The translations under genes and the position numbers were made by a program. A stretch of DNA of 63,148 nt, the filler included, from Octopus bimaculoides (lineage: Eukaryota): assembly GCF_001194135.2 (NCBI RefSeq). It is 4 parts of 4 records of this genome, joined end to end, with 100 filler letters (N's around TTAATTAATTAA, not from the genome) between each part and the next. Parts side by side here need not be neighbours in the genome. Positions count along the whole stretch, not along the records: positions 40,555 to 63,148 come from NC_068988.1; 3 more parts are not named here. One strand, written 5' to 3'. Shown piece by piece: positions 40,439 to 63,148 of this stretch (the stretch's first letter is position 1; every line of letters starts with the position of its first letter). The notes below the pieces were generated by a model. The model was not told the origin of the DNA, made no database searches, and was given only the letters and a program-made list of their open reading frames with translations.

Positions 40439-40903
40439 TTGTGCGCGGCATAGTNNNNNNNNNNNNNNNNNNNNNNNNNNNNNNNNNNNNNNNNNNNNTT
40501 AATTAATTAANNNNNNNNNNNNNNNNNNNNNNNNNNNNNNNNNNNNNNNNNNNNGGCACCGGACTCGCGGTCACAGGATCGCTGTTTCGATTCCCAGACC
40601 GGGCGTTGTGTGTTTATTGAGCGAAAACACATAAAGCTCCACGAGGTTCTGGCAGGGGATGGTGGTGAACCCTGCTGTACTCTTCCACCACAACTTTCTC
40701 TCACTCTTACTTCCTGTTTCTCTTGTGCCTGTAATTCAAAGGGTCAGCCTTGTCACACTGTGTCATGCTAAATATCCCCGAGAACTACGTTAAGGCTACA
40801 CGTGTCTGTGGAGTGCTCAGTCACTTGCACGTTAATTTCACGAGCAGGCTGTTCCGTTGATCGGATCAACTGGAACCCTCGACGTCGTAAGCGACGGAGT
40901 GCC
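40439..40903 (+). mobile_element. tRNA-derived SINE, third family, split by an assembly gap
   Basis: Head tgtgcgcggcatagt before the gap, continues ggcaccggactcgcggtcacagg...gtttcgattccc; matches 33373-33720. Confidence 0.8.
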
Positions 40904-41283
40904 TTGAATATACACTCACATATATGTACATATACAAACATATTATATACTTTACAAAATTGTTGAATTTGTGTTGAACTTAGGAACGCGAAACAGCAGT
41001 TTCAAGGTTATGGTGGTGTGAAAGAATGCTTTGATTTCAATACATGTAAATCATCCAAAAGGAAGAACAAACAATATTTTATATCATTCATTATTTTTAT
41101 TCCTTATATTTTCTGCACAATGTTACTTTCAAAATTTAAGCAAATTATCTCTGATTAACGATAGGAAATTAACTAAAGTCTTACATGAAGAAAAGTGATT
41201 TACAACGTTTTATGTAATACGTTAAAAAGGGTTTCAAAATCGGCGTCAGCAGCATTATATACCCTACGTCAATAATAGCATCG

Positions 41284-41289
41284 TTTATT
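41284..41289 (-). other. Poly(A) signal AATAAA of gene B
   Basis: About 145 nt after the stop, at the position homologous to the gene A signal (agcatcgtttatta vs agcatcatttatta). Confidence 0.65.
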
Positions 41290-41432
41290 ATATTTTTTGA
41301 AATTAATAATCTATATAATGAATGTAATTATATTTATCATTGAATCATTGAGACAGGATCGAGCAAATTGTCATGTTACATTGTTAGATAATTCCATAAT
41401 CAGAATATACTTATATGTAGTTCGGATTTACT

Positions 41433-41641
41433 TCAGCATATGAAATTATGGAAAAAAGGCCAATGATGATGACAGCAATGTTCGTGGAAGGGGTGTGACG
41501 AGGTGTAAGGGATATATCCACAACAGGCATTATTAGACCAATGTCGTTTTGGAACGATATGACTGTTGCAACATATTTCCCAAAATTGGTTATGCGGTCC
41601 ACAATCAGGAGGTTGAGTCCAGCCATTGACAGAGGACATTG
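41433..41641 (-). CDS. Gene B exon 2: galaxin-like, His-rich mature peptide
   Basis: Acceptor ttttcctattttacag|, phase 1: (A)MSSVNGWTQPPDCGPHNQFWEICCNSHIVPKRHWSNNACCGYIPYTSSHPFHEHCCHHHWPFFHNFIC*; 8 Cys, three CC pairs, 10 His. Confidence 0.85.
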
Positions 41642-42883
41642 CTGTAAAATAGGAAAATAAATGTTATCAGTAAACCTTATAGCACATACGTTTGGAAAGT
41701 GGAAAACAAGAAAATGTCGCTTGGTCAAATATCCACACATCACATCTGTATAACTTCGTATTTCATATATTGTGAATATTCAAAGAAATTAAACATTTTC
41801 CCCAAAATCTGTATTTACAGATGCGCATACATACATAAACACATACATACATACATACATATATACACACACACATATATATATATACTTACATACATAC
41901 ATACATACATACGCACATACATACGTACGTTTGAATGCATGAAATGCATCCCTACATGCATATATATATATATATATATATATANNNNNNNNNNNNNNNN
42001 NNNNNNNNNNNNNNNNNNNNNNNNNNNNNNNNNNNNNNNNNNNNNNNNNNNNNNNNNNNNNNNNNNNNNNNNNNNNNNNNNNNNNNNNNNNNNNNNNNNN
42101 NNNNNNNNNNNNNNNNNNNNNNNNNNNNNNNNNNNNNNNNNNNNNNNNNNNNNNNNNNNNNNNNNNNNNNNNNNNNNNNNNNNNNNNNNNNNNNNNNNNN
42201 NNNNNNNNNNNNNNNNNNNNNNNNNNNNNNNNNNNNNNNNNNNNNNNNNNNNNNNNNNNNNNNNNNNNNNNNNNNNNNNNNNNNNNNNNNNNNNNNNNNN
42301 NNNNNNNNNNNNNNNNNNNNNNNNNNNNNNNNNNNNNNNNNNNNNNNNNNNNNNNNNNNNNNNNNNNNNNNNNNNNNNNNNNNNNNNNNNNNNNNNNNNN
42401 NNNNNNNNNNNNNNNNNNNNNNNNNNNNNNNNNNNNNNNNNNNNNNNNNNNNNNNNNNNNNNNNNNNNNNNNNNNNNNNNNNNNNNNNNNNNNNNNNNNN
42501 NNNNNNNNNNNNNNNNNNNNNNNNNNNNNNNNNNNNNNNNNNNNNNNNNNNNNNNNNNNNNNNNNNNNNNNNNNNNNNNNNNNNNNNNNNNNNNNNNNNN
42601 NNNNNNNNNNNNNNNNNNNNNNNCTTATAATTAATAATACTTGGAGGGAAAGTTCTTTTATGCATATTTAGTTTAGCTTAGGAGGTGTAGTGTATTATAT
42701 ATTTAATTATACTTAGAGAATGAGTATTTAGTAGCGTGAAGACAGATTAGACTAGATTGATATCTCCTGTTTAATAGGTCATTCTTAGCTGTTAGGATCT
42801 CAAGGCACTCGGTTAAACAGAGCTGACAGCGCCTGTTAGTTGGGTTATAGGAATTAGCTACTTTTAGAATGTGCCAATATATA

Positions 42884-42919
<36 letters not shown>

Positions 42920-43814
42920 TGTATGTATGTATGTATGTATGTATGTATGTGTATGTATGTATGTATGTATATATTTTTGTATATATGTCGCTTCTGTATA
43001 TAACAATTTAAATTCCTCTTCCAAGAAGGAGTTGGTTTCTAACAAAGATACAAAGCTCTATCTTTGGAATGTATATAACGAAAACATTTTACATTTTAAA
43101 CTTACGAAAAGTCTTGCTTAATTTTAGTGTTTCTCTCACAGTAAAAGCTTATCCTGACTGACAGTGAAGCGTTTACTTAGAAAACCAAGTCTTCTGATTA
43201 TTTTTGGTATAAATGTAAATTTGTTATCCGCATAGAGAAGCCAGAGGTTTCGAAGTAATTGTCCATAATTATCTTCTTTTTCTTCCAGAATTTTACATCA
43301 GCAGCATATCTGACCCCTATGACGGTACATACTTTTCTTCTCTGTCCCAAGCAAAAATATCCGGTCTGTTATGCTTATGTTTAACAGATGTTTTGATGGA
43401 AATGTTTCATCAGTATTCCTTGATCTGATATTTGTGTACGTATTCAATAAAATGGGAATTCTCTATATTTATTTCAGAATAATCTTTTTTTTCGTATGGC
43501 AGTGTATATTGTTTTTGCGACATACATACAAAATGGTGCCGTCAACATCAGACGTGCTGGTGAAGTTGGCCGTTTAAAAAATATTTTTGAACGTTCCCTT
43601 CTAAATTTATGCCGACTTCTCCAGCCTAAAACAGTAACTAGTTTAGTTTTCCTATTATAAATAAGAGAAACACTTTTTCAGTACAAACGTAGCATTAAAG
43701 CGGATTTCAAAAATATATCTTATAACACGTGGAATTTCGCTAACGCGATTATGCCTGAAAGTAACACCAACACAACCGACGGAAGCCGCTCTACAATACG
43801 AAGATGTAAGCATG

Positions 43815-43865
<51 letters not shown>

Positions 43866-43989
43866 AAGCGAGCGTGTGCATGTAAGCGTATTCGGCTTAA
43901 ATTTAACTGTTTGCATAAAAAAAAAGAAAATCTCTTAACCACAAATGAAAGTATTTAAAACAATAAAAGAAAGCAGCAGGTGGATTATG

Positions 43990-44330
43990 GCTGGGAGACA
44001 ACGGTCCACTAATGTAATCGTCCTCAGCTTCCACCACAACCTCAAAGCGGTTCCGGAACCGGGTACATGCATTCCTCATTATGTATCTGGAAACATCTTC
44101 AAACATCTCGATTTTCGAGCTCCTTGGACTTCACCACAAGAACAACGTGTCCTTCTAAACTGCGCTGGGATGACAATCCACTTAAGTCTTGAAAGCCAGA
44201 GTAAATGTTTGGGGCCTACTCTTTTGGGTCCATTCTCATGGAGTCCACTCTCTTAGGGTTCAGTCTCTTGGGTTTCACTCTGAGCGTTTTGCAGAAGAGA
44301 CTCGTGTGAAAATGGAAACCACGGTTCACC
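43990..44330 (-). mobile_element. Tc1/mariner (maT-like) transposase C-terminal remnant
   Basis: IMRNACTRFRNRFEVVVEAEDDYI resembles the ACxxFRxRLEAVVEAEGGYIE terminus. Confidence 0.55.
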
Positions 44331-45810
44331 TTTTCCCTTTGCAATATATTTCGCCACCATGTTCTATCGTGACATTCACAGCAAAAATAAATTTATCATA
44401 AAAAGTGTTTTTAATCAAGGAAGGAGCAAACTATTCACCTCACTTTTTAGGGATCTACTGTATGCTGACAAATTATGACCTTGTCAGTCATACAGAGCAT
44501 GGAGTGCAGACGTTGATTTCTGCATCTAATTCGTCATGTGATGTCTTTGGTTTAAAGAAAATTTTAGTTGTGTGTCATTCTGCGCCTGATTAACTTGTGC
44601 AGCAACTTAAAACGTATGTGAAAGATAATTTTCTTATGATTGTCGAGTCTTTCATATAATTTGGGTGCGTTGTAAATAAAACGGAACATTTGTATCAGAA
44701 ATATATCCAAGGATTCAAAAGGCAGCAAATTCTTGGAAATTTTGAATAAACAGTTAAATACAGGTAAATACAGGTAAATACAGTTACATAAAGGTAAATA
44801 TCAGGAGAAAATAAAAGACGGACATAAAAGGGAATACGGACTTGGTGGATGTTTTTTAGTTGTGATTTCGTGGTATAATATACCTGTCTGAATCGGATTA
44901 ATCTCACATACGAGCACACAATAATGCACTTTCTATTAATATTGGAACATACCCATAGTTTTAATCTTATCAATATCCCATATGTCACGGGATACGCAAA
45001 TCTCAATGATATTTGAAGGATCATTTCAAGGTTCATTAAGAGAATACCACAGGTAGTTCAAGCAACATCAAAACTAATGCACGGTTAATGTGGAGGTCTG
45101 TTTAAAAGTATGTCTGGTCTAAAAAGCCACATAAGGTCCCATGGCAGAATTGAACATCGTGTACACAGAGGTAGTCGATGCGGAACGTAAAAGCGAAATA
45201 AGGATTAAAAATGTTGACAAAAACTTAATGACGTTCTTGAAGGGAATCGGATAAGCTCCCTTATTCAAAATCCCCTTCTAATAACAATTGCTTCAGACAG
45301 AGCCATGACATAGAATATTCAGAAGCTGTTGGAAGCATTAGAAACTGACAAGAATGTGGATAGAATGTAAATTTGTTGTTGGCATCCTTTTTGTCTCGGG
45401 AGACAATGGAGTTGCGCATGAAATAATCTAGTCCGGTTTTTACATTTTATTCACTTTAATTTACTTTAAGGTATGGATGACTGAAGTATACTTTTAACTT
45501 CCCCGCTCTTCTAAATACCTAGTAAATAACGAACTCGCTTTGTTATCATGAGTGCACCAAACCACGCATGTGCTTAGGCTCACATTTTTGGTGATGCTTC
45601 TATGAGCGTGTGTACTCGTGCCATGCAGCTTGCCCGAGGGCTTTTATACATCCATATCTTTTAACGGTTATGTCCAATACTTTTCTCGCTGGATTATGTG
45701 TTCGTTTCTCTTTTATCTTCTGCAATATTATTTTTGATCTATACATATGAAGATCTTTCCTTCGTTTGGCTGTTTTTACATTGTGGAACAGTCATTTTAA
45801 CGAGTTGCTT

Positions 45811-45860
<50 letters not shown>

Positions 45861-45861
<1 letters not shown>

Positions 45862-45964
45862 TCACCCGATGAGATACATCTGCACCACCGGATGCTCCTG
45901 AACCAGTTGTGGAGTGTCCCACAAGAGGAATCGATGCTAGATGTGTCGAAACAATTGTCGTGAT
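45861..45964 (+). ncRNA. Type I hammerhead ribozyme with long stem II (CCGAUGA core)
   Basis: AUCAC-CCGAUGA-GAUACAUCUGCA...UGCUAGAUGUGUC-GAAAC-AAUU-GUC-GUGAU; 5-bp stem I, 12-bp stem II with one bulge, canonical G-C closing pair. Confidence 0.7.
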
Positions 45965-46046
45965 TAATAATATATTCTCGTATATTTCATCTTCTGTCAT
46001 TCATTTGTTATANNNNNNNNNNNNNNNNNNNNNNNNNNNNNNNNNN

Positions 46047-46121
<75 letters not shown>

Positions 46122-46756
46122 ATATATGTATGCGTGTATGTATAATATGAACATACGTAGGCTTTATAATTTGACTTTGGTCTCTTCAAATGTCATGCAA
46201 CTACAGCTTGAGTTTTCTGATATCGCCAAAGTCAGGTATTTTATGAAATACTATCGATGGCTGAATTTTCTGGAAGCATTCACATCGTCCATGAATACCA
46301 CATCTACCTCTGCATAGAGAAGTTGATGCAATGATTTCTATTAGTAATGTTTTAACAACTTGTAATTGATACTTTTCAGTAGGAATTTATTACCGACAAA
46401 ATTATACATGCAAACCTACCTTCACACACATGCATATGAATGTATGTATATATATATATACACATGCATGTGTATGCTTCCATATGTGTGTTATAGATTT
46501 GTGTAAGCGGCGATACATCTACGCAGTAGAGAAATCTGGGGAGAAGAGTTACCAACGACTTGTAAACGATGCTAAACTTCAAGTGATTATTTTGTCAGAC
46601 TTTTAAAAATCTTTTTCTAAAAGTGAATATCTACTTCATAAAAGAATTTCTACAAACAAAGGCAGATGAATAGAAATAACTTAATGATATTCCTACTTTT
46701 CTATAATCAATAAAATACATTTTTCAGGAAAGAATGGCCAACTGGAACAAATTTAC

Positions 46757-47470
46757 TACGAAGGTAGACTGAAAAGTTCATAGGCTGACTGTGAAAGAGA
46801 GCTGTGGAATCTTGCATGCATTAATTTTAACCCTTCTTCTTAATAACTGCATTGTTTCGTTCCAGGTATACTGATATCTGACTTTCAAACGTAACTAGTT
46901 GCAACAACAGACATGACAATACTAGTTTCCAGTGAAGTGGTTTTTACCTGGGTAACAGATGATAGTCAGATAGGGTCAAAACAAGGAGATTTGGGAGGTG
47001 ATCAAAGCCACAGTTACGCACGACAGCCATGGAAACAAAGGACTTGTGTGCTGGAGCATTGTTCTGATGAAACGATACCCCTTTCCTCAGATTTTCTGGG
47101 CGTTTAGTCTTAGTAGCGCTTCGTAACTTCTGCAGCAATTTCGCATACTATACTCCATTGACAGCGCGGCCCTTTCGAAGATAGTCAATAAACGCAGTAC
47201 CTTTTGATTCCAACAAAACCAAGGCATCTACCTTCTCTGCAAAGGAAACAATCTTAGCCTCGTTTGAAGCAGCTGAGTTAGGGTGTTTCCACTGCATATA
47301 TTGTCTCTTTGTTTCTGGCGCAAAGTGATGAAGCTAACACTGAACGTAGGTTAGGAAACGTTTACGGAAACCAGTTGGAACTGTCTAAATGTCGGGTTTT
47401 CTCGTGATATGACCAACCTGATGCTATTTAAATGAGCACGCCAAGTTCATTCTGTAGGATATTCTCAAAT
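46757..47470 (-). mobile_element. Mariner (DD34D) transposon 3' half
   Basis: HHFAPETKRQYMQWKHP...IDYLRKG...FHQNNAPAH...LSDYHL; TIR-like tacgaaggtagactgaaaagttc at 46757. Confidence 0.85.
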
Positions 47471-48437
47471 CACGCCCTGGATACGTTAAAAGGATTGGCT
47501 GTTTGATTTATATTCAGTTTCCTGTTACCCCTCATCGTGTGGCGCACACGATCCATGTTTCCTTCAGCGTGGTATATTTGGTTATATTCGAGACTCACCC
47601 TTCTCCTCTTAAATTCAGCTGCCCACTTTTGAAGCAACCATGCTACCATGAATGTCAGTGGGGGCTAAACCCTTCTTCTGCAGGTAATTCACGATGCAAA
47701 ATTTTGTCTATCTCCAAGAGAAATCGGTATTAATTACATTTGAAGTCTGCTTACCTTAAAAGTAATACGCAGGTATTAATAAGAAGATTTGAAATGAATG
47801 CATACAAGTTTCTACATCTCTAGTATCAACCCTCCACTGTCAGCCTGAGCCTTTTAGCTCAGCCTCGTATTTTGCTAGTTTTTAGAACAACAAGCGCAAA
47901 AACATTTAAAGTACAGTTTAATTAACTAAATGTCTCATGTAATCGTATTTTACGTTCCATTGACTCTGACAAGCTACTGATTGTTAATTTATTACACGGG
48001 TAGATACGGTGGTGCAAGGGTAAACTCGATCAATTCTATCGCAGTTCTTGATCTAAAATTAGCTTTATCTATCAGAAATTTAAGAAAACTAAGTTGATTG
48101 CAGCGAGAAGTGATCGCAAATGAGTGGACTGACTGTTGGTAGTCGTATTGTGAGACCATTACTGACTCAAACGAAATAATTATTTTATAACTTACGAACA
48201 GGATTTCATACTTTAAGGAAAGGTATAAGACTAGTATATCATCGACCCACTGATGAGTGAAAGTTAACATCGGCCCTGGCCCTTATCAAACGAGGAACAT
48301 AAAAGGTCTTAACTAAATACAACAACGGTATGAATATTCCTTCAATCCATCAAATCTTGGCTGCAAGACAATATAAATACATAAACGCGAAAGAAATGTG
48401 ATAAGAGGAAGGCAAATGTTTGTGTAGTTTTTCTTAC

Positions 48438-48486
48438 CTGTTACAAAGAGCAGGAAAGCGAAGATAATTAATGTTTTTTGCATCAT
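48438..48486 (-). CDS. Gene B exon 1: signal peptide
   Basis: MMQKTLIIFAFLLFVT+g then donor |gtaaga; 49 nt, phase 1, joins exon 2 in frame. Confidence 0.85.
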
Positions 48487-48517
48487 GATAGTGCTTTGGT
48501 CAACTGCCAGAACAAAA

Positions 48518-48552
48518 TCTGATACTGAAAGACTTTACCATCGATATTTATG
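48518..48552 (-). promoter_or_regulatory. Candidate core promoter of gene B
   Basis: cATAAATA followed ~27-33 nt later by TCAGT/ATCAGA Inr-like motifs; alignable with gene A. Confidence 0.55.
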
Positions 48553-48917
48553 CGTTTGGGGAACAATTGAAGGGGACTTCAAAACGCTTGTGATGAGAAT
48601 TTCTCACAAAACTAATTAAGAAAAGAAAATATGCAAATTAAGACTGGCAGATATCATCATGATTACAAATATGTAAAAGTTATTTTTAGTCATCTACTTT
48701 TGTTTGTAGCAAACTCAATTGTTTTCATTAAGGCAAACTGGATTGGTGGTGTTTGAAATTATCACGTTTTCTAACACCCGATAGCAATATTATTATAACT
48801 TGATTAAGTTTCATATACAGAGAATGAGTCACTAGAAGCAATCCTACTTAAGATATCAAATAGTTCAAGTTTGTGAATTTTAAAATCAAAATACAAATTT
48901 AAACATGTTTAAACGTT

Positions 48918-49590
48918 TACTATCCAGTGGATCAAATATTTCAAAATATGATGCTTCATGCACTTATTAGCGTCGTTAGAAAACAATCAAATAATGCTGC
49001 AACAGGATGTATTAGGCCACTTCTAGCATCTACTAAATGTCTGCGTTCTAAAAACAAATATTGAAAATAATAAAATGTAAGACTGCCTTGACCAGAGATT
49101 TTCAACCGGGGTCCAAATAAGCTTTTTAGGGGTTCACGGATGCAATATAGGAAATTGGGTGTCCAGTGTAAGTTTTCAGGTCAAAAGAAATTGTGCTTCA
49201 GACCAGTAATTTCCAATGTGGACTCCAGCTTCTCAATATTGCACTCCCAGTCTTAGAAACTCTCTAAAAAAAAAAAAAACAACAAAAAATGCCCTGAAAA
49301 ATGTTGCAAGAAATCTTGTCTTTCCTAATGTATTTATTTCGTTGCCTTTCGAAAGAAGGACTAAGAAAAGAGAATTCAAAAACTCAAAACATTTATCTGT
49401 GAAGCTGGTCATAAAATTCTCCAGGGAATTTCCGTGGAATGTGAAAGATATAATTCTGAGCAAAAACAGCGTTAACAACAATGATGTCGAGAACAGCAGC
49501 ATCAACAAAATTTTTTAAATATTTACTCCCGTGCACTCACAGACTTAGCGCTTACTATCTACTAGAACAAATATTTCAGTATGATATATT
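48918..49590. repeat. ~635-bp upstream unit plus start of a second copy, shared with gene A upstream region
   Basis: Marker tactatct/ccagt..a.caaatatttc at 48918 and 49553; homologous to 60601 and 61216. Confidence 0.7.
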
Positions 49591-50150
49591 CTAAGTTATT
49601 CTCGCTAAAAATATTCATTTCTGTTTTAGCTGGGTTAATTAGTCTACATTTAGGTATCCTACGAAAATTAGCTTTGTGGTCCTTAAGGGTAATAAAGGAT
49701 TGACGTGGGTGAATGTATTCTATCCTATCGTTAAATCTAAGATTGGTAGTGATCCTTCTTGCTTCCATATTTACATCTTTTTATTCACCTGTTTAAGTAA
49801 ATTACTGTATAGTCAAAGCTTAACAAACAGTAACAGAGCCTATAAGACTAGAACTAAGAAAGTTTTGTGATTTAATCCGACATTTAATATTGCCGTAAAA
49901 ACTAATATAGGTAGGGAATTCTCGAAGCTAATTTTTAAGAACATTCAAGCAGACCATAAGTACCATTGAAGTTTTGATAATAACATGCTGAAGGTTAGCT
50001 ATTTTTGTTGTTAGAACTTTCCGTCTTTAATTAACCAGCACAACGCAAAACTATTAGGAATAACTACAGTGTTGGAAAAAATCAGAAGAATTATAATTGT
50101 AAAGACCAAAATTGCTGTCCGTTGGGAGAAAACTAACTAGAGAAAGGAAT
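49562..50150 (-). mobile_element. Penelope-like RT N-terminal fragment
   Basis: QSFITLKDHKANFRRIPKCRLINPAKTEM. Confidence 0.8.
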
Positions 50151-50989
50151 AGTATGCAGAGGTAAGGTACAAATAGATGGCTCACAAACAGGACATATTC
50201 AAGGGGCACGGAAAATTCCTTCAAGGCAGGCCTATATTCTCATCGATATTCATGTCAATATCCTGAAAATAGGACAGCAATGAGTCTCGCTAAACATGTC
50301 TGACATTTGAAATAAAGTGATACTTTTCCTTTCAAATAATTCTGGACAATCTTGGAGAGAGCAGTACCATATGAATATCGAGCGTATAAAGGCTATCTGA
50401 GGTGCAATTTATGCCTGACTGAGAAAATATTACGTACTTTGTCGGGGTAAATACGCCCTGACTCAAAGGTTGGACCATTTAAATTTCTGTAGAGGCGCCA
50501 CGATTATAAAATATCGAGCGAAAAAATACCGTACGGGTAAGATTGATTTTATAACCAGTACCAATTTGTATAACATTCATTTTACATTTTTGGCTTTAAA
50601 GAAATCCTTTGACTGGATATAAACGATATGCTTCGTTTTAATTTTTATTTTCATTATTTTATTGCAACTTTTACTCTTAAATACACCTTTTATAAACTAT
50701 ATGGATATTTTTACATCACAATTTAGTCCATAAATCCTTACAACGTTGGTGTTTAATGCACACCTAAAAAGAGCATCTACCGCCGCCCAAAATGTACTTT
50801 AAAAACTATCGAATATCCGAATGGATATTATTATTACTTTTAGTTATCGTATTTTTCCTCATTACTAATTAATTATTTTAATATCATTGTATTTATTCAC
50901 CATTGATATTATTATTATTAACAAAGCAGCAACAATGGCATAACCTTAAGTAGCTAGAGAAAATGTCTAGCAATATTTTGTCAGCAGTT

Positions 50990-51780
50990 AAGTCTTGATT
51001 TAAATCCACTACAAACCAACTGATTCCTAACAATACTTTCTTCTATTCACCTCCAACCACACAAAGCACACGAAAAGAAACATTCCTTTTAATCTAGCGA
51101 AAAGAATTTGCAGAATTGTTTCAAATTAGGAAACGTGGGACAAAAGACCCCCAAGAATTAAAGGAAATTCTACTCAAAAGTCAGTACCCATCACCATTAA
51201 CTGATAATAGAATAGAACGGGCCAAGGCAATAAACATCCAAGATTCACGAAAACCGAAACACACCGAAGGTACGCTTTCATATCTCTCAACACACAATCC
51301 AAGAAATACAGAAGCTTACACCATTATACACAAGAACATCCCACTACTGTGCCAAGACCCGCGATTAAAAAAGTACTCGAAACCCATAAAATAATAAAAA
51401 GCAAGAGACAACTCAAATCCTTAAAAAATTACTCAGCAATGCAAAATTACCCACCACAAATCAAATATCAACCGTCAAAAAATGTAATCGCTCTAATTGC
51501 GGGACTTGCATTCGCCACATTGAGGGTACAATGTTAGGACACACTTTTGTTGTAAAAAATTTCACCTGCGCATCAAAAAATTAATTTATGTAATTAGATG
51601 TAAAGAGTGCCACAAAGATTACTCAGAGAAAACTAGACATAACATCAGAGACAGGATAACAGTCCACCTCCAACATTTACGGGGCCCCACCACATGAAAG
51701 ATGCCACGCAGTGGCCACTTAGCTCTCTGTGCAAAAGCAACTCTCCTAAATTCCAAGTTTTCTACTTTTATTGGAATTTT
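50990..51780 (+). mobile_element. Penelope-like RT thumb plus GIY-YIG fragment
   Basis: HYKPTDS..SNHTKHTKRNIPFNLAKRICRI...IYVIRCKECHKDY; frameshifted. Confidence 0.8.
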
Positions 51781-51989
51781 TAATTGTAATGATTTTGAAT
51801 TTTCTTTCGATTTTTTATTCGTTTTTTAACCAGTGTTATAGAAAATATGTATATTTATTTAATGAAAATATAATATACAAAATCAAGACCATACAATGAC
51901 TATTGTAAATACATCTGTAATTGTAAATATTTCTTTATGGTTGGAAGATGATAAATGATTTGGAAAGCAAGTGTAATATATTTGTGTTT

Positions 51990-53180
51990 GTATACTCATA
52001 TTTTTATTCTTCTCTTTTGCAGGATGGTACAGAGGGGAAAAGAGAGTCATGAAATTCGGAATCCCAGGAATTTGGAGAGNNNNNNNNNNNNNNNNNNNNN
52101 NNNNNNNNNNNNNNNNNNNNNNNNNNNNNNNNNNNNNNNNNNNNNNNNNNNNNNNNNNNNNNNNNNNNNNNNNNNNNNNNNNNNNNNNNNNNNNNNNNNN
52201 NNNNNNNNNNNNNNNNNNNNNNNNNNNNNNNNNNNNNNNNNNNNNNNNNNNNNNNNNNNNNNNNNNNNNNNNNNNNNNNNNNNNNNNNNNNNNNNNNNNN
52301 NNNNNNNNNNNNNNNNNNNNNNNNNNNNNNNNNNNNNNNNNNNNNNNNNNNNNNNNNNNNNNNNNNNNNNNNNNNNNNNNNNNNNNNNNNNNNNNNNNNN
52401 NNNNNNNNNNNNNNNNNNNNNNNNNNNNNNNNNNNNNNNNNNNNNNNNNNNNNNNNNNNNNNNNNNNNNNNNNNNNNNNNNNNNNNNNNNNNNNNNNNNN
52501 NNNNNNNNNNNNNNNNNNNNNNNNNNNNNNNNNNNNNNNNNNNNNNNNNNNNNNNNNNNNNNNNNNNNNNNNNNNNNNNNNNNNNNNNNNNNNNNNNNNN
52601 NNNNNNNNNNNNNNNNNNNNNNNNNNNNNNNNNNNNNNNNNNNNNNNNNNNNNNNNNNNNNNNNNNNNNNNNNNNNNNNNNNNNNNNNNNNNNNNNNNNN
52701 NNNNNNNNNNNCCTCAAAGCCGTGCTACTTGACGCTCATCATGATAAATTTAAGAACATGGGAGAGTATTCGGAGGATCAAAGAAAGCGATTCCACCAAG
52801 ATATAATGGACATTGAACGCCGTTACCAAGGATCGCGTAACGAAAGCATGAAGGGAGACTACATTTGGTCACTTATTCGTAAAAGTAATTTACAGTATAA
52901 GCGTAAATCGCGAAAAAGTACTCGCTTCTAAATATTTTGCGGTGTTTTTTCTACAATCCATGAATAAATACATGCCACTTTTGCATTATATGTCACTTTG
53001 TTCCTACCTTGTATGAATGAGAATGTTCACATTTGCCGGTTTTCTCAATGGTATTAGTTAAACTTAAGACACATCTTTATCCTGGCCACAAAAACAAAGT
53101 TTGAAGTAAATACTTTCTACATCTAACCAAATAGGAAATAGTTTTTGTTTCCTATAGACAAAAATTGTGTTATATAGCGA
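51990..53180 (+). mobile_element. Chapaev-like DNA transposon, middle hidden in gap
   Basis: Before gap WYRGEKRVMKFGIPGIWR; after gap LLDAHHDKF...EYSEDQRKRFHQDIMDIERRYQG...DYIWSLIR, matching the MxFAxPxIWREP and SDEHGERFHQDI motifs I associate with Chapaev3; family name from memory. Confidence 0.65.
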
Positions 53181-53789
53181 GTCAACGTGGTCCTGTCATT
53201 TATTATATTATCTATTTCAGTTCTTTATGCTGTTATTGATTCTATTTTATAGATTTATCTGATTAAAAAATGAAGTATTTTCCAATGATCTATATTTTTA
53301 ATGATGTTTTGAGTTGCCGATTTTGACGTATGGGGTATCAAAAACTTAGCAAGCTTTTGGCTACTAACTAAACTATATTTCCATTTTCATATTTGCATTA
53401 CAAAAATTTAACTTTATCCTTTTTCTTTTAGTCACCTATCATAAACGACATTTTAAATCACCACAACAACGACGATAACGTCACATATTCTATAGGAGTG
53501 TGTTCGTGCGTTCGTTACCTACGTTAGGCTGATGAGTGACAAGTATATTTGTGTGACGGTGTATGTGTCTGTCAGCATACATACATTTTTGGTGATAACT
53601 GGCACACACACGGAAAGAGGTAGGCTTCAAGTGTGCCTTAATGTATGTGTGTATGTCTTAGTTTATGTATGTAACTTGCTCCCGCCCGACAGTGAAACCC
53701 GCCGATATTGAAAGTTTATATGCGGTCTGGACTTTAAACGAACAACAAAGTTCACTTTCAAGTACTACTAATATGAGGATTTTACTAAT

Positions 53790-54350
53790 TTAACACCACT
53801 TACAATTCTTGCAAATATATCCGAAAAAAAATGTTATTGTGGTTATTATAACGAATTCGGGAACTTGGTGAAATGGAAAGCCTCAGCAGCTCTTGCAATA
53901 TATTTACAGAAATATTATTCCACTCCTTCTAAGCAATTTCAAGATAATTTTTAACAGTCTTCCTAAGCTTCTACATCACTTTGAGTATCATCGTTGCACA
54001 AACGTTTTACTGTGTTAGTATTTATTCTACAGCCTATAGCGTTACACCGTAAAAAATATGTAGTAATGTCCAATTAATTTATATCTTGCTACATACATCC
54101 TTCAGTAAATATTTCAAATTAACGTTCACAGCAACACCATCTTCCTTTCTATACACTTGGTTGAGCGTTCGTTTCAAAATTGTAAAATAAATTATTTTTG
54201 TATGAAAAATTGAATTATGCATTCTGAATTTTCTTGGACTTTCACTTTTTTCACCATGATATTCAATCGTAAATTTTATAACATTTAGTACATGTTCCAA
54301 ATAAATGTTGACTTTCTGTACTTTGTAACACTGGTGACGCATAGTTTCTT
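53790..54350 (-). mobile_element. Possible decayed Tc1 transposase C-terminus
   Basis: KEWNNISVNILQELL...SPSSR resembles the EEWxxIxxxxLQxLxxSMPxR terminus. Confidence 0.35.
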
Positions 54351-54489
54351 TTGCTAAATTGGTGACTTTCCATTATATTATAGCATAACTATGCTATAAA
54401 AAGTATGTTTTGCATCTATATTGACTACATTTCGTTTCGCTTGAACGTCGTATGTGTACATTTTGCTGTTTGTAGTATTATCAAGTGTA

Positions 54490-54538
<49 letters not shown>

Positions 54539-55768
54539 CTGAGTTCTTTACATCTATAGTAAACTATAGTAAAGAATATTTTATGCTGTTTTAATGAGCC
54601 CACATCTAATGAAGTAGCTATCCATATGGTCAGTGATCCCCATGAAAATCATGATATTCTCATTCGTGTTTAACAACCGTAAACATGTTTCACAGACTCA
54701 TCACTCTTATCATGCTCTCTAGTATATTGTGTGGAATGTACAGGATGGGTATCATTTCAATATTCCACGGTTTGAACCAGCAAACAGTATAGCCAATTAC
54801 ATACAAAAAGGTTCTGGGAAGCATATGTGAATTTGGTCTTAATTGAGAATTTAGCCTTAATTGGGAAGTTGGCCTTAATTGAGGACACAGTACGCTTCTG
54901 TTATATATCCGTCTGAAAATGGTGATTCCTGGGGCTAAATAGCAGTAGCATTCTTCTCTTTCCTGGGACTGCCACATTAAGTTGGTAACAAACCATCACT
55001 TTATCGTGATGCTACTGTATAAGTCTCTCAGAGATTTAGAAATGCAATATTTCTGATTTTATATAATTTTTATTGTTCCTTTTTATATTGAAAATTAGTG
55101 TTAATGCTGCTATTATTATTGTAAGGTTCCATGTTCCTATTGATATGGTCAATGGATAATTTATTATTTATATTTTTATGATTTTGGCCATAACATACTT
55201 TTGGTTTATAATGTTTGGGTTGTAATGCATGTATGTTTACCTTATTATCAATATTAGGATAAGCTTTAGTCTTAAGGTCTATCTTTGTCGTTTCCACTAC
55301 CTTATTTCTATGCTGGTTATTTTTGTTCAGTATATAGTTATTATATAATCTATTAAATGTTTTATCTTTATTTATTGTATTAATCATAGCTTTAGTGTAA
55401 AGTTTTTCGCACCAAGGTTATATTTTCTTTCTTGTAGATGTTTATGTTTGCCATGAATCGTATGTAAACCATGCTTAATGTATTTAATTTTCTGTTTGTA
55501 CCCTGATTTTGCCAATGCAATATTATACAATTCCTTGTTAGAAATATCTTCGTTGAGTGAGAGGCAGTTTATTATTTATTTTATGTTATTACAGACATTG
55601 AATGATTACTTTTTATATTAACATAAGTGATTTTGGAGTTAGGCTTATGGTATATATATATATATATCATAAATGTCTTATAACAGCCATACCAACAATC
55701 CAACACACCTCCATCATAAGCCGCTCCATGGATATCACTATGGTTTCGACACCTGGGCAGTACCATTC

Positions 55769-55856
<88 letters not shown>

Positions 55857-56302
55857 GCATGCATACATACATACATACATACATAGACACACACATGTAT
55901 ATGCGTATATATGCGTACATACAACCATGTTCTATACTTTACCAAGGTGACAAATTTGTGTTGAGTTTAGGAACGTGTAACACCAGTTTCAATGATATAG
56001 TGACGAGAAAGAATGTTTTGATTGCAATACATATAAATCATCTGAACTTGTATTCAATTAGACTTTGACTTTTATAATAAGAAAGAGAACACACACGATT
56101 TTATTTCAGCCTTGATATTCATTTATTAAAATTTTGGTGCGATGATGCTTTCTGAATTTAAACAAATTATCTATAACTTACGAAAGAAAGATAAAGTATT
56201 TTTATGAAGAAAAGTATTTTGCAAAGTTTTATGCTATACATTAAAAAGAGTTTCAATGTCGGCGTCAGCGGCATTATATAAAGTATATTAATTATAGCAT
56301 CA

Positions 56303-56308
56303 TTTATT
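56303..56308 (-). other. Poly(A) signal AATAAA of gene A
   Basis: About 140 nt after the stop; position conserved with gene B. Confidence 0.65.
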
Positions 56309-56447
56309 ACATGGGAAGACTAGTAATCTATATAATGAAAGTTATTATATAATTGATTGAATTATTGAGAGAGAATCGAGCAATTTATCATTTCATTCTT
56401 GGACGATTACAGAATTAGTATGAACTAATATCAAGCTGGGATTGACC

Positions 56448-56611
56448 TCAACATACGAGTACATAGATATACCACCAAGGCCAACAGAACCACCATCGGC
56501 GACAACAAAATCTACGCCACCAGGGGATTATTTGTGTTCCACAACAACTATGAGTATATGGATTATACAATTGACCACCACAGACATTCCATTGATGGCA
56601 AGACTGTACTG
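56448..56611 (-). CDS. Gene A exon 2: galaxin-like, Trp/Arg-rich mature peptide
   Basis: Acceptor ttttcttattttacag|, phase 1: (A)VQSCHQWNVCGGQLYNPYTHSCCGTQIIPWWRRFCCRRWWFCWPWWYIYVLVC*; 8 Cys, 8 Trp, 4 Arg, no acidic residue. Confidence 0.85.
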
Positions 56612-56929
56612 CTGTAAAATAAGAAAATAATCGAAATGAGAATTAAACAGTTCTTATTGCATTAAAAAGCTATATAAAATCTATTTAAATTATATGAAAA
56701 CTTGTTTTAGAAAAGCTAATTCAGAAAGACATGAATGTATGGAAATGTATGGTGATCTTTTTCTGTTTGGCTGCTGCTTTTCAATTTCATCTATTTTGTC
56801 CCAATTAATTTCAAGTTTGGTGTAGTTTTGCATTGACACAAAATTAATTCTCTGTTCTTAAAACAACAAAATATATTGCTTACACTTTTTACCGCACGAA
56901 ATGCATATCACTTGCGTAAACTATAAAAT

Positions 56930-57101
56930 ATATGCTCATTATTTACATTATTTACATTTGATGGATATTTGTCCTCATCTTGTTTCTTGTTAACACAACG
57001 TTTTGGCTGATACACCCTCCAGCCTTCTTCAGGTGTCTTGGGGAAATTTCGAACCTGGGTTCTCATTCCTAAGGTATTGTTCAATGTTGTTGTTGTTGTT
57101 G

Positions 57102-57175
<74 letters not shown>
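56930..57175 (-). mobile_element. Inverted copy of the 3' half of the Penelope terminal/SINE-like unit
   Basis: Reverse complement of 58050-58256; hammerhead GAAA mutated to AAAA. Confidence 0.8.
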
Positions 57176-57490
57176 GTTCAGTAGTTTTATTTTTATAACG
57201 TGCTTTCACTTCACTACCGAGCGCAGCTCTGTGCGCCTTGGGTATGTGCTGTGGATTGCTGTGGTGCTCCTATGTTTACTGTATTGAAAGTGTTTTGCGT
57301 AGAATGTGTGCAGTACCCAGTAGTGCAATTTTCTGTATGTTATATATATTTGTAAGTTCTGGTGTTTTTGTTATGTATTTGTCTGAATATTTTTTTAATT
57401 ATACCTAAGGCACCTACTATGATAGGAATTGTTTCTGTTTTTAGATTCCACATTCGAGTTATCTCTATTTCCAGGTCTCTCTGCTGGTAT
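57176..57490 (-). mobile_element. R4/Dong-like retrotransposon 3' end
   Basis: DLEIEITRMWNLKTETIPIIVGALG...IQKIALLGTAHILRKTLSIQ*, short UTR, ending in (TAA)n. Confidence 0.85.
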
Positions 57491-57930
57491 TGATACAAAA
57501 GATATGTGGCCCATATGACATCAGGACAGTATTCAAGAGTAGTACAACACTTAGCAAATATCTCCTTCGTGTAAAACCACCAATAGAAGAGAATATGACC
57601 AAAGACTGCGTGTACTCCATCCCATGCAGCTGTGGTAGGTTATACAAAGGCGAAACATGCCACTCCCTCAAAATAAGGGTAGACGAACATCGCAAAGCTG
57701 TGACACGAAGAGATATTGATAAATCGGGTATAGCTGATCATGTATAGAATAATAGAGACCACCTCCCTCTGTGGGATGAAGTTAAAATAATAGACAGAGA
57801 ACACCACTGGAAAATAAGGAAACTAAAAGAAGCAGCACATATGCTAGGACACAACAACCTCCTAAGCAGACCGAGTGCAGTTATGAGCAACATATGGGAA
57901 CTGGTGTTAAGGAAGGATAGAAAATATTAG
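57490..57930 (+). mobile_element. Penelope GIY-YIG endonuclease fragment
   Basis: DCVYSIPCSCGRLYKGET...RVDEH...SGIADHV*...KIRKLKEAAHM. Confidence 0.85.
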
Positions 57931-58256
57931 ATTTATAAGCCCCAAAATTCCCTCCATAATTGTCCATGGGCATATGGCGTAGTGGTTAAGAGCGCGGGCT
58001 ACTAACCTCAAGATTCCGAGTTCGATTCCAAGCAGTGACCTGAACAATGATAATAATAATAATAATAATAATAATGACAACATCGAAATATACCTTAGGA
58101 ATGAGAACCCAGGTTCGAAATTTCCCCAAGACACCTGAAGAAGGCTGGAGGGTATATCAGCCGAAACGTTGTGTTAACAGCAAACAAGATGAGGACAAAT
58201 ATCCATCGAATGTAAGTAATGTACATAATTCCTCATCTCTTAAATATAGAACTGAA
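57931..58256 (+). mobile_element. Penelope terminal region containing tRNA-like head, (AAT)n and hammerhead
   Basis: tggcgtagtggtt (A box) and gttcgattcc (B box) within 57975-58030, directly after the GIY-YIG stop. Confidence 0.7.
58130..58175 (+). ncRNA. Minimal type I hammerhead motif
   Basis: GACAC-CUGAAGA-A-GGCUG-loop-CAGCC-GAAAC-GUU-GUGUU; palindromic ACGU stem III. Confidence 0.65.
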
Positions 58257-58843
58257 GATATATGCTGGTTACTCGTTTTTTGATCATTTTGTTTTTGCTT
58301 ATTAAATGCTTACAGCACGTGTCATCGTACAATGTTGACGTTATCCTTTTGTAGTCTCACGATCTCAATCACGCACAAAATGATAGCTTCCAAATGCGGT
58401 TTTTTCGACTGGATTTAAATTATCACAATTGAAACGCCTATAACTTGTTAAAGATTCTTTTGTGGAACAAGTGATATAGGCCCTACTACGTAGCGTGAAA
58501 AGTGACATAAATACACAAAATTTGAATATTTTGACTGAAATTTTAAAATTTCAAAAATTGCAGTCAAACAGAAACGATCCACGTATGGAGGTCATATGTC
58601 AGCACTTTTTGCAGTTTTCAGCAGTTTCATTCGAACATGTTATCCTGTAAAACTTATAACACATGTGTTTGGAAAGTGGAAAAAAAAAAAGAAGGAAAAG
58701 TCGCTCGGTCAAATATTCATACCTGAAATTTGTATCATTTCGCATATTTATAGGGAAAAAAAGAATTAAATTTGGAATCTACTTTTTATATATTATGAAT
58801 ATATAAAGAAAAAAAAGATTTTTCTCAAATTTGTATCTACATA

Positions 58844-58878
<35 letters not shown>

Positions 58879-58890
58879 TTATTTATTTAT

Positions 58891-59934
58891 TTATTAAAAA
58901 TCTCAGAGTAGCAACAAAATTTAGAAATAATTTTTGTTACCAGTGGTCTAGCGAGAAGAAAAAAACTAGTCAATAGACTATACATTACTCATATAAATAC
59001 ATACACATAAGCGAGATGTCCATAATAGGACATCTGACCCGCTAGAAGAAGCAGTCAATCTCCAAACTCCAATTAGGGATAATTTCAAAAGAGAATGAAA
59101 AATAAAACATTTACCATCTGTTCCCTGAACCATGGTTCCAAGCTATTTTCAGCAAAATAAAATAATTTGCCAGGTCAGCTATCATCAGCAGGAAAGCCAA
59201 GATTAACATATAAACACGTGGCAATACATAGAACATGCCTCGTGCTTATATGTTATAATTTTTCATATCTACCCCGCATGTGCAGTTTTCTTATCGGCAG
59301 CAAATACAAAAAGTGCCGATTATCTTCCAGAAATTAGCCAAAAAATCATTATATCATTATTAATAAATCTCAGGGTAGCAAAAAAAATCTAGAAATTCTT
59401 TTTGCTTCCAGTGGTCTAGCTAGAAGAAAAGAACTAGCCAATAAACTATATATCATTCATATAAATTCATACACTGTACATTTAAACACATAAGATAAAT
59501 TTCCATAATAGTACATCTAACCCGCTAGAAGGAGCAGTCAAACTCCAAACTACAATTAGGGATAATTTCGAAAGGGAATGAAAAATAAAAACATTTACCA
59601 TCTTATTTCCTGAACCATGGTTTCAAGCTATTGTCAGCAAAATAAAATAATTTGCTAGGCCAGCTATCATCAGCAGGAAAGCCAAGATTAGTATATAAAC
59701 ACGATGCAATACATAGAACATGTCTCGTGCTTATATGTTATAATTTTTCATATCTACCGTGCATATGCGGTTTTCTTATCAGCAGCAAATACAAAAATGC
59801 TGATTTTCTTCCATAAATTAACCAAAAAATCATTTTCCCATTATTAATAAATCTCAGGGTAGCAAAAAAATTTAGAAATTCTTTTTGCTACCAGTGGTCT
59901 AGCAAGAAGAAAAAAAACTAGCCAATAGACTATA
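58891..59934. repeat. Tandem duplication, ~470-485-bp unit, ~2.2 copies, in gene A intron
   Basis: aatctcag.gtagc at 58899, 59366 and 59850; units align throughout. Confidence 0.9.
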
Positions 59935-60117
59935 AATGTACACTGTATGTGTTTATATGACTAATATATAGTCTATTGGTATTACTTCATCCCAATCATA
60001 TTTTTCTACAGCACAAAATGAATACAGCAGCACATAATGACTACAGCACAAAATGAATAAATAAATGCGAAAGTGAAGTAATGAGTAGGATGCAAATGTT
60101 TGTCTAGTTATTCTTAC

Positions 60118-60166
60118 CTGTTACAAGCAGCAGGAAAGCAACGAAGATAATTAATGCTTTTTGCAT
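60118..60166 (-). CDS. Gene A exon 1: signal peptide
   Basis: MQKALIIFVAFLLLVT+g then donor |gtaaga; 49 nt, phase 1; differs from gene B exon 1 by an in-frame 3-nt indel and substitutions. Confidence 0.85.
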
Positions 60167-60199
60167 TATGGTCGTCTTTTGGTCAACTGCCAGCACCAC

Positions 60200-60234
60200 A
60201 ACTGATCTTGGAAGGTTTACCATCGATACTTATG
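60200..60234 (-). promoter_or_regulatory. Candidate core promoter of gene A
   Basis: cATAAGTA about 31 nt upstream of ATCAGTT (TCAKTY Inr), 35-40 nt before the ATG. Confidence 0.6.
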
Positions 60235-60600
60235 CGTTTAGTGAACAATTGAAACGAACTTCAAAACGTGTGTGACAGGAATTTCTCACGAAAATAATTA
60301 AGAAAATAAAAAGATTCAAATTAAGACTAACAAATATCATTAGAAATATGAATATCTGCTGGTTATTTTTAATCTTCTGCTTTTGTTTGTGGAAACCTTA
60401 ATTGTTTTCATTAAAACAAGCTGTGTTGGTGGCATTTGAAATCATCACGTTTTGTAACAACTGATAGCAATACCATTATACCTTGATTAATTTTTCTACA
60501 GGGAATGAGTTACTAGAAGAAATCTTTCCTTTAAACTGTGAAACATATTAAGTTTATAAATTTTGAAATCAGAATATAAGCTTAAACATGTTTAAATGTT

Positions 60601-61780: not shown

Positions 61781-62675
61781 NNNNNNNNNNNNNNNNNNNN
61801 NNNNNNNNNNNNNNNNNNNNNNNNNNNNNNNNNNNNNNNNNNNNNNNNNNNNNNNNNNNNNNNNNNNNNNNNNNNNNNNNNNNNNNNNNNNNNNNNNNNN
61901 NNNNNNNNNNNNNNNNNNNNNNNNNNNNNNNNNNNNNNNNNNNNNNNNNNNNNNNNNNNNNNNNNNNNNNNNNNNNNNNNNNNNNNNNNNNNNNNNNNNN
62001 NNNNNNNNNNNNNNNNNNNNNNNNNNNNNNNNNNNNNNNNNNNNNNNNNNNNNNNNNNNNNNNNNNNNNNNNNNNNNNNNNNNNNNNNNNNNNNNNNNNN
62101 NNNNNNNNNNNNNNNNNNNNNNNNNNNNNNNNNNNNNNNNNNNNNNNNNNNNNNNNNNNNNNNNNNNNNNNNNNNNNNNNNNNNNNNNNNNNNNNNNNNN
62201 NNNNNNNNNNNNNNNNNNNNNNNNNNNNNNNNNNNNNNNNNNNNNNNNNNNNNNNNNNNNNNNNNNNNNNNNNNNNNNNNNNNNNNNNNNNNNNNNNNNN
62301 NNNNNNNNNNNNNNNNNNNNNNNNNNNNNNNNNNNNNNNNNNNNNNNNNNNNNNNNNNNNNNNNNNNNNNNNNNNNNNNNNNNNNNNNNNNNNNNNNNNN
62401 NNNNNNNNNNNNNNNNNNNNNNNNNNNNNNNNNNNNNNNNNNNNNNNNNNNNNNNNNNNNNNNNNNNNNNNNNNNNNNNNNNNNNNNNNNNNNNNNNNNN
62501 NNNNNNNNNNNNNNNNNNNNNNNNNNNNNNNNNNNNNNNNNNNNNNNNNNNNNNNNNNNNNNNNNNNNNNNNNNNNNNNNNNNNNNNNNNNNNNNNNNNN
62601 NNNNNNNNNNNNNNNNNNNNNNNNNNNNNNNNNNNNNNNNNNNNNNNNNNNNNNNNNNNNNNNNNNNNNNNNNNN

Positions 62676-63148
62676 ATGCCTGTTGAGATACTCTGTAGGC
62701 GCAAGAAGACTGCACATAGAGACAACATGATCGATGGTCTCATTTTGTTGTTGGCATATACGACATAATGGGGAGCTGCCGTTCTTTAATATGTTGGCCT
62801 GGTAGTTATTTGTAGGTAGGCATTGATCTTGGGCTGCTATGATAAACCCCTCTGTTTCTGATTTCAAGCCAGAGGCCATTAGCCATTGATGGGTAAGGGC
62901 TTTGTCAATATCTGCATTATTCGCTCTCTTTGGGTATTTGCCATTAAGAGGTTTTCCATGCCATTTTTCCATGCCATAAGATGCTATCTTGCTTTCATGT
63001 TTTAAGACAAGTTTTAGCATCCAGTCCTCAGAGTTTTTCAGATAGGTGTCTAGGCCAATTGTGGCTACCTTCATTGATAATACCAGCTGTAGAAGTCCTC
63101 GGCCTCTCTCTTTTCTTGGCAGATAAAGACGTTCTATATCTGCCTTAG
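62676..63148 (-). mobile_element. R4/Dong-like retrotransposon fragment (post-RT and CCHC)
   Basis: WHGKPLNGKY...WLMASGLKSETEGFIIAAQDQ...CRICQQQNETIDHVVSMC; runs off the window and into a gap. Confidence 0.9.

Follow-up and report, generated by a model that had tools for sequence, protein, structure and literature searches.

The question raised by this locus of Octopus bimaculoides is whether two pairs of short exons, each pair separated by an intron of several kilobases, encode genuine secreted peptides and, if so, to which protein family these belong and which function they may serve. The window, i.e., the whole stretch of DNA that was analyzed, comprises 63,148 nt joined from four parts of assembly GCF_001194135.2, and the locus lies in the piece from 40555 to 63148 (NC_068988.1; G+C content 34%, four assembly gaps), to which the following analysis refers. 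A first-pass annotation had described a hidden tandem pair of intact mini-galaxin-like secreted peptide genes at this place. It is highly probable that both, named A and B in the following, are indeed genes of short galaxin-like peptides. For the complete account, in which such genes would form a tandem cluster in octopuses, would have lost galaxin repeats, would evolve under diversifying selection and would act in host defence, we see somewhat better than even chances.

Both genes are located on the minus strand in head-to-tail orientation, with B 8.0 kb downstream of A, and each consists of two exons. A 49-nt coding part for the signal peptide is followed by a GTAAGA donor, a phase-1 intron, and a single Cys-rich exon. 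When the exons are joined in phase 1, A yields 70 amino acids (aa) and B 85 aa, with eight cysteines in each, and thereby both peptides were recovered exactly as given in the first-pass annotation. The motifs resembling a TATA box and an initiator as well as the AATAAA signals that it had named could also be read at both loci. The features of the two genes, including the untranslated regions (UTRs), are as follows.

60201-60260, minus strand: core promoter of A, with the TTCAATTGTTC block, the TATA-like CATAAGTAT (60234-60226) and the initiator-like ATCAGT (60206-60201), putative +1 at A 60203.
60118-60166, minus strand: coding part of A exon 1, 49 nt from ATG 60166; MQKALIIFVAFLLLVT and the first base of an Ala codon form the putative signal peptide; GTAAGA donor from 60117.
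56612-60117, minus strand: intron of A, 3506 nt, phase 1, gap-free; acceptor ...TTATTTTCTTATTTTACAG.
56448-56611, minus strand: coding part of A exon 2 (56611-56451) and TGA (56450-56448); (A)VQS-CHQWNVCGGQLYNPYTHSCCGTQIIPWWRRFCCRRWWFCWPWWYIYVLVC*, one galaxin repeat and a tail rich in Trp and Arg.
56303-56447, minus strand: 3'UTR of A up to AATAAA (56308-56303).
48518-48575, minus strand: core promoter of B, with TTCAATTGTTC, the TATA-like CATAAATAT (48552-48544) and the initiator-like ATCAGA (48523-48518).
48438-48486, minus strand: coding part of B exon 1, 49 nt from ATG 48486; MMQKTLIIFAFLLFVT and one further base; GTAAGA donor from 48437.
41642-48437, minus strand: intron of B, approximately 6.8 kb, phase 1, containing the gaps 41985-42623 and 46013-46046; acceptor ...TTATTTTCCTATTTTACAG.
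41433-41641, minus strand: coding part of B exon 2 (41641-41436) and TGA (41435-41433); (A)MSS-VNGWTQPPDCGPHNQFWEICCNSHIVPKRHWSNNACCGYIPYTSSHPFHEHCCHHHWPFFHNFIC*, approximately 1.5 galaxin repeats and a tail rich in His.
41284-41432, minus strand: 3'UTR of B up to AATAAA (41289-41284).

A 21-nt acceptor motif and a 27-nt donor motif are each present in exactly two copies in the window, with chance expectations of 0.01 and 0.00, respectively. No third Cys-rich exon was found in the piece from 40555 to 63148, where the remaining Cys-rich frames are artefacts of microsatellites. Chance does not account for the splice joins, since the B join corresponds to a deposited UniProt protein and the A join to the gene model of an orthologue in Octopus vulgaris. 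The spliced product of B is 100% identical over its 85 aa to UniProt A0A0L8G8N6 of O. bimaculoides ("Uncharacterized protein"). For A, a word-indexed search revealed no set of three 5-residue words shared with any of 5.8 billion protein clusters, and its exon 2 is part of no deposited model in that protein collection, which holds the 2015 O. bimaculoides gene set. The orthologue of A is annotated in O. vulgaris as CAI9727409.1 (P0004), a "hypothetical" protein of 72 aa. Hence, the tandem pair of intact secreted-peptide genes stands, and of the attribute "hidden", all that holds is the absence of A itself from this protein collection; the notion of an unannotated family does not hold for B, nor for A0A0L8FU16, XP_036361356.1 and CAI9727409.1, all of which are on record.

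That both reading frames had arisen by chance in AT-rich non-coding DNA is thus of practically negligible probability. Only the shortness of the exons speaks for it, and it is refuted by the exact UniProt match of B, by orthologues and paralogues of the same structure in two other species, and by family-specific matches in a library of 1.84 billion proteins.

The closest relatives differ in how they are annotated. A0A0L8FU16 (P0003) of O. bimaculoides has 94 aa and is listed as "Galaxin-like repeats domain-containing protein", and XP_036361356.1 of Octopus sinensis (P0005, P5 in the following) has 96 aa and bears the RefSeq name "galaxin-like". CAI9727408.1 of O. vulgaris (P0006), with 350 aa, spans 96 kb (L003:10001-14516, with L003 denoting the reversed OX597821.1 locus); it departs from the family exon 2 after residue 56 and joins the exons of an unrelated downstream gene. 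This is a fused gene model, and if exon 2 is read through, a 95-aa peptide of the P0003 type (P3-type) ending in ...CCVRHPWWNFEYLTC results. In O. sinensis, an intact A-type exon 2 is found at L002:392-562 (CM016866.1), which differs from that of O. vulgaris by 1 nt over the aligned coding sequence. No called gene of that record contains this exon, and the corresponding gene appears to be unannotated. Literature searches by accession and by galaxin combined with octopus or cephalopod returned no description of these short peptides; the family bears automatic "galaxin-like" names, and according to this search, none of its proteins has been studied. New in this work are the gene model of A for O. 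bimaculoides, relative to the protein collection searched, and the corrected P3-type model of O. vulgaris. The rapidly diverging mature exon and the C-terminal tails rich in Trp/Arg, His, or Tyr also appear to be undescribed so far.

Both genes share their promoter design with their relatives. The TATA-like box is positioned 29-30 nt upstream of the initiator-like ATCAG motif in A and B, and four related genes from other octopuses keep the arrangement, which is thereby conserved in six genes from three species, as are the splice sites. The motif TTCAATTGTTC (60241-60251 and 48561-48571, minus strand) is invariant in all six family promoters, approximately 45 nt upstream of the TATA-like box. 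With regard to the loci L001-L004, it is found approximately 100 nt upstream of each ATG, including that of a 168-aa paralogue tens of Mb distant, and it is a candidate for a shared transcription-factor site. At the start codons (60166-60172 in A, 48481-48490 in B), ATGATG (MMQ...) is present in B and in most relatives. The first ATG of this pair reads ATA in A, so that its start must be the second ATG (MQK...), and codon 2 of the O. vulgaris A orthologue is GTG (MVQ...). In A and B, MQK is followed by a hydrophobic core of 13-14 residues, and the −3/−1 rule allows a cleavage site behind VTA17 of either peptide, with a second such site behind VQS20 of A and S19 of B. Residues 2-21 were modelled as a helix by AlphaFold. 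Judged by this N-terminus, the products of both genes are predicted to be secreted.

The derivation of the mature peptides from galaxin repeats, with 1 to 1.5 repeats each, was evaluated with the Pfam profile PF24748 (Galaxin_repeat), for which the curated gathering cut-off is 28 bits. The hidden Markov model comparison proposed in the first-pass annotation gave a divided result. A (16.3-18 bits) and B (22.2-22.6 bits) both remain under the cut-off, which weighs against the assignment, and it is exceeded by their paralogues P0003 (50.1 bits) and P5 (37.4 bits) and by the re-spliced O. vulgaris P3-type peptide (36.8 bits). Shuffling of the mature peptides with the cysteines kept in place abolished the match in all cases (0/8 shuffles, a small sample, compared with both real peptides), so residues other than Cys contribute to it. 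In the opposite direction, a profile built from A and B gave 35 matches at E<=1e-3 among 1.84 billion representative proteins. Of the long matches checked, 25 out of 26 carry Galaxin_repeat with 47-415 bits, the remaining one being a HYR-domain protein, and four short proteins among the matches (P0003-P0006) have the same signal peptide and overall design as A and B. The homology to galaxins is significant in both search directions. A further candidate, the IGFL family (Pfam PF14653, cut-off 25 bits), was rejected; it matched A with 14.5-16 bits and B not at all, and it reflects cross-talk of the CC motifs, since true galaxin-repeat proteins also give weak IGFL matches.

The repeat of A reads C-GGQLYNPYTHS-CC-GTQIIPWWRRF-CC plus tail, with its two CC pairs corresponding to one repeat, and the three CC pairs of B correspond to approximately 1.5 repeats. 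Along the family, the number of CC pairs falls from approximately ten in the 168-aa paralogue to four in the 94-96-aa type, three in B, and two in A. In an alignment of six tails, the Trp after the last CC and the terminal Cys are invariant; WP is present in five of the six sequences and WW in the O. vulgaris P3-type. Neither A nor B contains a long tandem array of di-cysteines. With both the curated score and the long array failing, the data support a classification of A and B as galaxin-derived mini-peptides and not as typical galaxins. Coral Galaxea galaxin and Euprymna scolopes EsGal1 to EsGal10 are likewise secreted, with regularly spaced di-cysteines and the patterns CG..YNP.T..CC and CC..[IV].P..CC, but these proteins carry many tandem repeats (up to seven reported, EsGal5; the long matches have 180-970 aa), and the Trp/His/Tyr-rich tail of A and B is not part of the galaxin repeat. 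The short octopus proteins XP_036361356.1, A0A0L8FU16, and CAI9727409.1 are closer. They have in common with A and B the signal MMQ[KR]TLIIF..LLFVTAVQS, the WP...[LI][VI]C tail, the 49-nt signal exon, the GTAAGA donor, the phase-1 intron, the promoter motifs, and the chromosomal cluster. Compared to the 94-96-aa type, A has one full repeat less and B half a repeat less, and the mature sequences are approximately 30-60% identical.

The order of the two genes can be followed into other octopuses. In O. sinensis, the A-type exon 2 is located 9.4 kb upstream of exon 1 of P5, the corresponding distance between A and B being 8.0 kb. Since this order matches and the introns of P5 and B are collinear, the A-then-B arrangement is ancestral and P5 is the positional orthologue of B. 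In O. vulgaris, the A orthologue and the P3-type gene are approximately 55 kb apart on OX597821.1. When the family profile was used as query, "galaxin-like" proteins of 168 aa emerged in O. vulgaris and O. sinensis (P0036 and P0037), which have the same two-exon phase-1 structure, GTAAGA donor, and promoter. As a member of the cluster, however, this paralogue was ruled out; it lies on the same chromosome but approximately 80 Mb (O. vulgaris) and 36 Mb (O. sinensis) away. Between A and its O. vulgaris orthologue, identity reaches 90% in the promoter (over 200 nt), 87% in the signal exon, 93% in the last 100 nt of the intron, and 87% in the first 200 nt of the 3'UTR.

Within the mature coding sequence, the picture is different. 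While A and B are 93.5% identical in the coding part of exon 1, 78-79% upstream, and approximately 75% in the 3' flank, the coding part of exon 2 reaches 48% and is effectively unalignable. B and P5 share 50% of exon 2 compared to approximately 80% of the flanks (101 differences in 202 coding positions vs. 101 in 499 flanking positions; Fisher p=2.6e-14). A and its O. vulgaris orthologue differ at 32/161 coding vs. 52/489 flanking positions (p=0.004), with the surplus of differences lying mainly in the C-terminal half (21/79, p=4e-4). The A exon 2 frame is nevertheless open in all three species. The coding indels of the A-type exon 2 in O. vulgaris and O. sinensis are restricted to 3 nt and 9 nt, whereas indels of arbitrary length are found in the flanks. 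In neutral simulations at the observed divergence of 20%, A exon 2 stayed open in 4.7% of the trials, and at least seven of its eight cysteines were kept in 6.7%. As the coding sequence outpaces the adjacent non-coding DNA with frame and cysteines kept, this argues for diversifying selection on the mature exon rather than decay, which would be the reading of these comparisons that we prefer.

The opposing possibility is that A has no function, being a recent pseudogene or a duplicate that was never expressed and whose frame is open by chance, so that B and the longer paralogues alone would be functional. A is missing from the protein collection with the 2015 gene set, and the ratio of its nonsynonymous to synonymous substitution rates (dN/dS) against the O. 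vulgaris orthologue is approximately 0.95. A value near 1 is also expected of neutrally drifting sequence. Moreover, the O. vulgaris orthologue has seven cysteines instead of eight, with Cys59 not kept, and carries GATAAA in place of AATAAA. Against such a loss of function stand the frame that is open in three species with the two small coding indels, the neutral probabilities of approximately 0.05 and 0.07 for the open frame and the retained cysteines, and the conservation of the promoter (90%), the last 100 nt of the intron (93%), and the splice sites. A decaying copy should also change at the rate of its flanks, but the coding sequence is faster, and a gene model exists for the orthologue in O. 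vulgaris. We regard a non-functional A as quite improbable.

The account that we favor can be outlined as follows. A and B would be neighbours in a tandem cluster of genes for short galaxin-like peptides that is restricted to octopuses. Each gene has a TATA-plus-initiator promoter, a signal-peptide exon, a phase-1 intron, and the whole mature peptide in one exon. Cleavage after VTA or VQS/MSS would release peptides of 50-68 residues with eight cysteines, composed of one (A) or 1.5 (B) galaxin repeats of the form CG-x3-YNP-x-T-x2-CC ... I-[IV]-P ... CC, followed by a family-specific aromatic tail with WP and the terminal Cys. They may have originated by duplication of a longer galaxin-like gene from which repeats were lost in register. 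During this process, signal exon, promoter, intron ends, and 3'UTR would have been kept while the mature coding sequence diverged, a pattern typical of secreted effectors under diversifying selection. The products would then be secreted host-defence or antimicrobial peptides and, in effect, natural single-repeat galaxins.

The composition of the mature peptides is unusual, with aromatic residues and His together accounting for 24-38% in the family peptides vs. 10.7% in the 168-aa paralogue. Mature A contains eight Trp, four Arg, and no acidic residues (isoelectric point (pI) 8.7), and its O. vulgaris orthologue ten Trp and six His. In mature B, ten of the 65 residues are His (pI 6.8), and in mature P5 of O. 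sinensis 12 of 76 are Tyr. The C-terminal half of A (IIPWWRRFCCRRWWFCWPWW) is cationic with many Trp, Arg, and Pro residues and no acidic ones, and in this it resembles the Trp/Arg-rich antimicrobial peptides of the indolicidin, tritrpticin, and lactoferricin type. However, the latter are short linear or single-disulfide peptides unrelated in sequence, and B and P5 are His- or Tyr-rich and not cationic. The genes with the strongest differential expression in the two symbiotic organs of the bobtail squid Euprymna scolopes are ten galaxins, and synthetic single repeats of EsGal1 and EsGal2 (EsGal1R3 and EsGal2R4) inhibit bacteria at 50-300 uM (PMC12773714). With these antibacterial repeats, the aromatic and His-rich composition, and the effector-like evolution as its basis, a host-defence function of the A and B peptides would be the most probable one, with chances that we place a little short of even.

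Several further points weigh against this account. B is near-neutral and His-rich, which is not the profile of a classical cationic antimicrobial peptide. AlphaFold2 with a family alignment of seven sequences returned models of low confidence, with a predicted local distance difference test (pLDDT) score of 67 for A and 61 for B; the tails were below 50, and moderate confidence was limited to the signal helix and two to four short strands in the repeat. A Foldseek comparison of the A model with the PDB gave nothing meaningful (best E-value 3.5), and a profile search of the PDB sequences found no relative. Neither A nor B was retrieved from an assembly and transcript index, in which the exact sequences of B and P0003 gave no match. 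Finally, the galaxins of corals are skeletal-matrix proteins, and by this analogy, homology alone would not favor defence over structure.

A structural role is indeed the rival with the most to be said for it, although we consider it rather unlikely. The peptides would be parts of a secreted matrix or cuticle, e.g., of sucker lining, beak, radula, stylet, or egg capsule, with the Cys framework and the His/Tyr/Trp tails serving to cross-link, to coordinate metals, or to bind chitin, in the manner of the galaxins in the skeleton matrix of corals. The high share of aromatic residues and His, with the ten His of B and the 12 Tyr of P5, would suit such a function, and His/Tyr-rich compositions of this kind resemble those of cephalopod hard-tissue proteins. 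The invariant motif in all family promoters also suggests a single specialized cell type. The founding galaxins are skeletal organic-matrix proteins, and those of molluscs have been discussed for shell formation (PMC12773714). Matrix proteins, however, are usually long, repetitive, and not hypervariable, whereas the products found here have merely 50-76 residues, lack low-complexity Gly/Ala-rich repeats, and are encoded by a mature exon that evolves two to four times faster than its flanks. This hypervariability and the short, disulfide-rich, secreted products would also fit salivary or venom components or signalling peptides, i.e., toxin-like ligands in an arms race with prey or receptors as in conotoxins, and toxin gene families likewise combine signal exons and UTRs that are conserved with mature exons that can no longer be aligned. 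Yet neither a propeptide nor a dibasic processing site is present, the Trp-rich hydrophobic tail is unusual among receptor-targeted toxins, and the homologues with tested activity are antibacterial galaxin repeats. In the literature searched on galaxins and octopus, galaxin-like peptides were not described from the saliva or venom of octopuses, and we see only slim chances for this explanation.

With host defence as the preferred reading, the evolutionary mode of the cluster can be compared to that of other hypervariable secreted peptides. In conotoxin superfamilies, amphibian skin peptides, and some defensins, the signal, UTRs, and Cys framework are conserved and the mature peptide evolves fast, as in A and B. 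The likeness is one of evolutionary mode only, since such families have no sequence kinship with A and B and a different Cys framework, and A and B are without a propeptide. In a bolder version, which we put forward tentatively, the cluster would represent a cephalopod-specific antimicrobial peptide family, in which galaxins were trimmed to a single repeat with Trp/Arg-, His-, or Tyr-rich tails and diversify under selection as vertebrate defensins and conotoxins do. If true, the peptides would be the natural equivalent of the synthetic repeat peptides of EsGal, and the galaxin repeat would be an ancestral antimicrobial module. Gene-encoded antimicrobial peptides of cephalopods have so far been described from few families. 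Galaxins are widespread in invertebrates and poorly understood; they have been discussed as matrix proteins of corals and as antibacterial proteins of the bobtail squid. The cluster of one-to-three-repeat galaxins offers small, synthesizable natural units with which the function of the galaxin repeat can be tested, and it clearly exemplifies how a gene family evolves through the loss of repeats in combination with a hypervariable mature exon. A practical gain is the gene model of A, which was missing from the searched O. bimaculoides protein set and from the O. sinensis record.

Of the four assembly gaps, those at 41985-42623 and 46013-46046 lie inside the B intron, 52080-52711 is intergenic, and 61781-62675 is upstream of A. 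Neither reading frame depends on a gap because no exon touches one. On both sides of each of its two gaps, the B intron is collinear with the gapless orthologous intron of O. sinensis (window positions 46371, 44143, 43145, and 41982 correspond to 12184, 14247, 16548, and 18636 of L002, CM016866.1), which supports its order and orientation, with its length being approximate only. Microsatellites flank all gaps and are the likely cause of the assembly breaks.

The surrounding DNA contains several repeats. A tandem duplication of approximately 470 bp with 86% identity is located at 58883-59937 within the A intron. The same intron holds an inverted pair of an element of approximately 187 bp (56938-57124 and 58043-58229, 90% identical) adjoining a (TTA)n run. 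With further copies of 82-89% identity in at least three places of the O. vulgaris locus L003, the element is judged by its sequence to be a dispersed short repeat, similar to a short interspersed element (SINE) or a miniature inverted-repeat transposable element (MITE). The left edge of the piece (40555-40905) matches L003:11567-11898 with 90.7% and L002:28227-28591 with 83% identity on the opposite strand. Because this similarity exceeds that of orthologous non-coding DNA (75-80%), it is probably a young dispersed repeat. Upstream of A, a 133-aa open frame at 62676-63074 (minus strand) runs into the gap 61781-62675 and matches Pfam zf-RVT, the zinc-binding C-terminal region of reverse transcriptases, with 24.2 bits (cut-off 27.5); the frame is probably a remnant of a retrotransposon without long terminal repeats (non-LTR).

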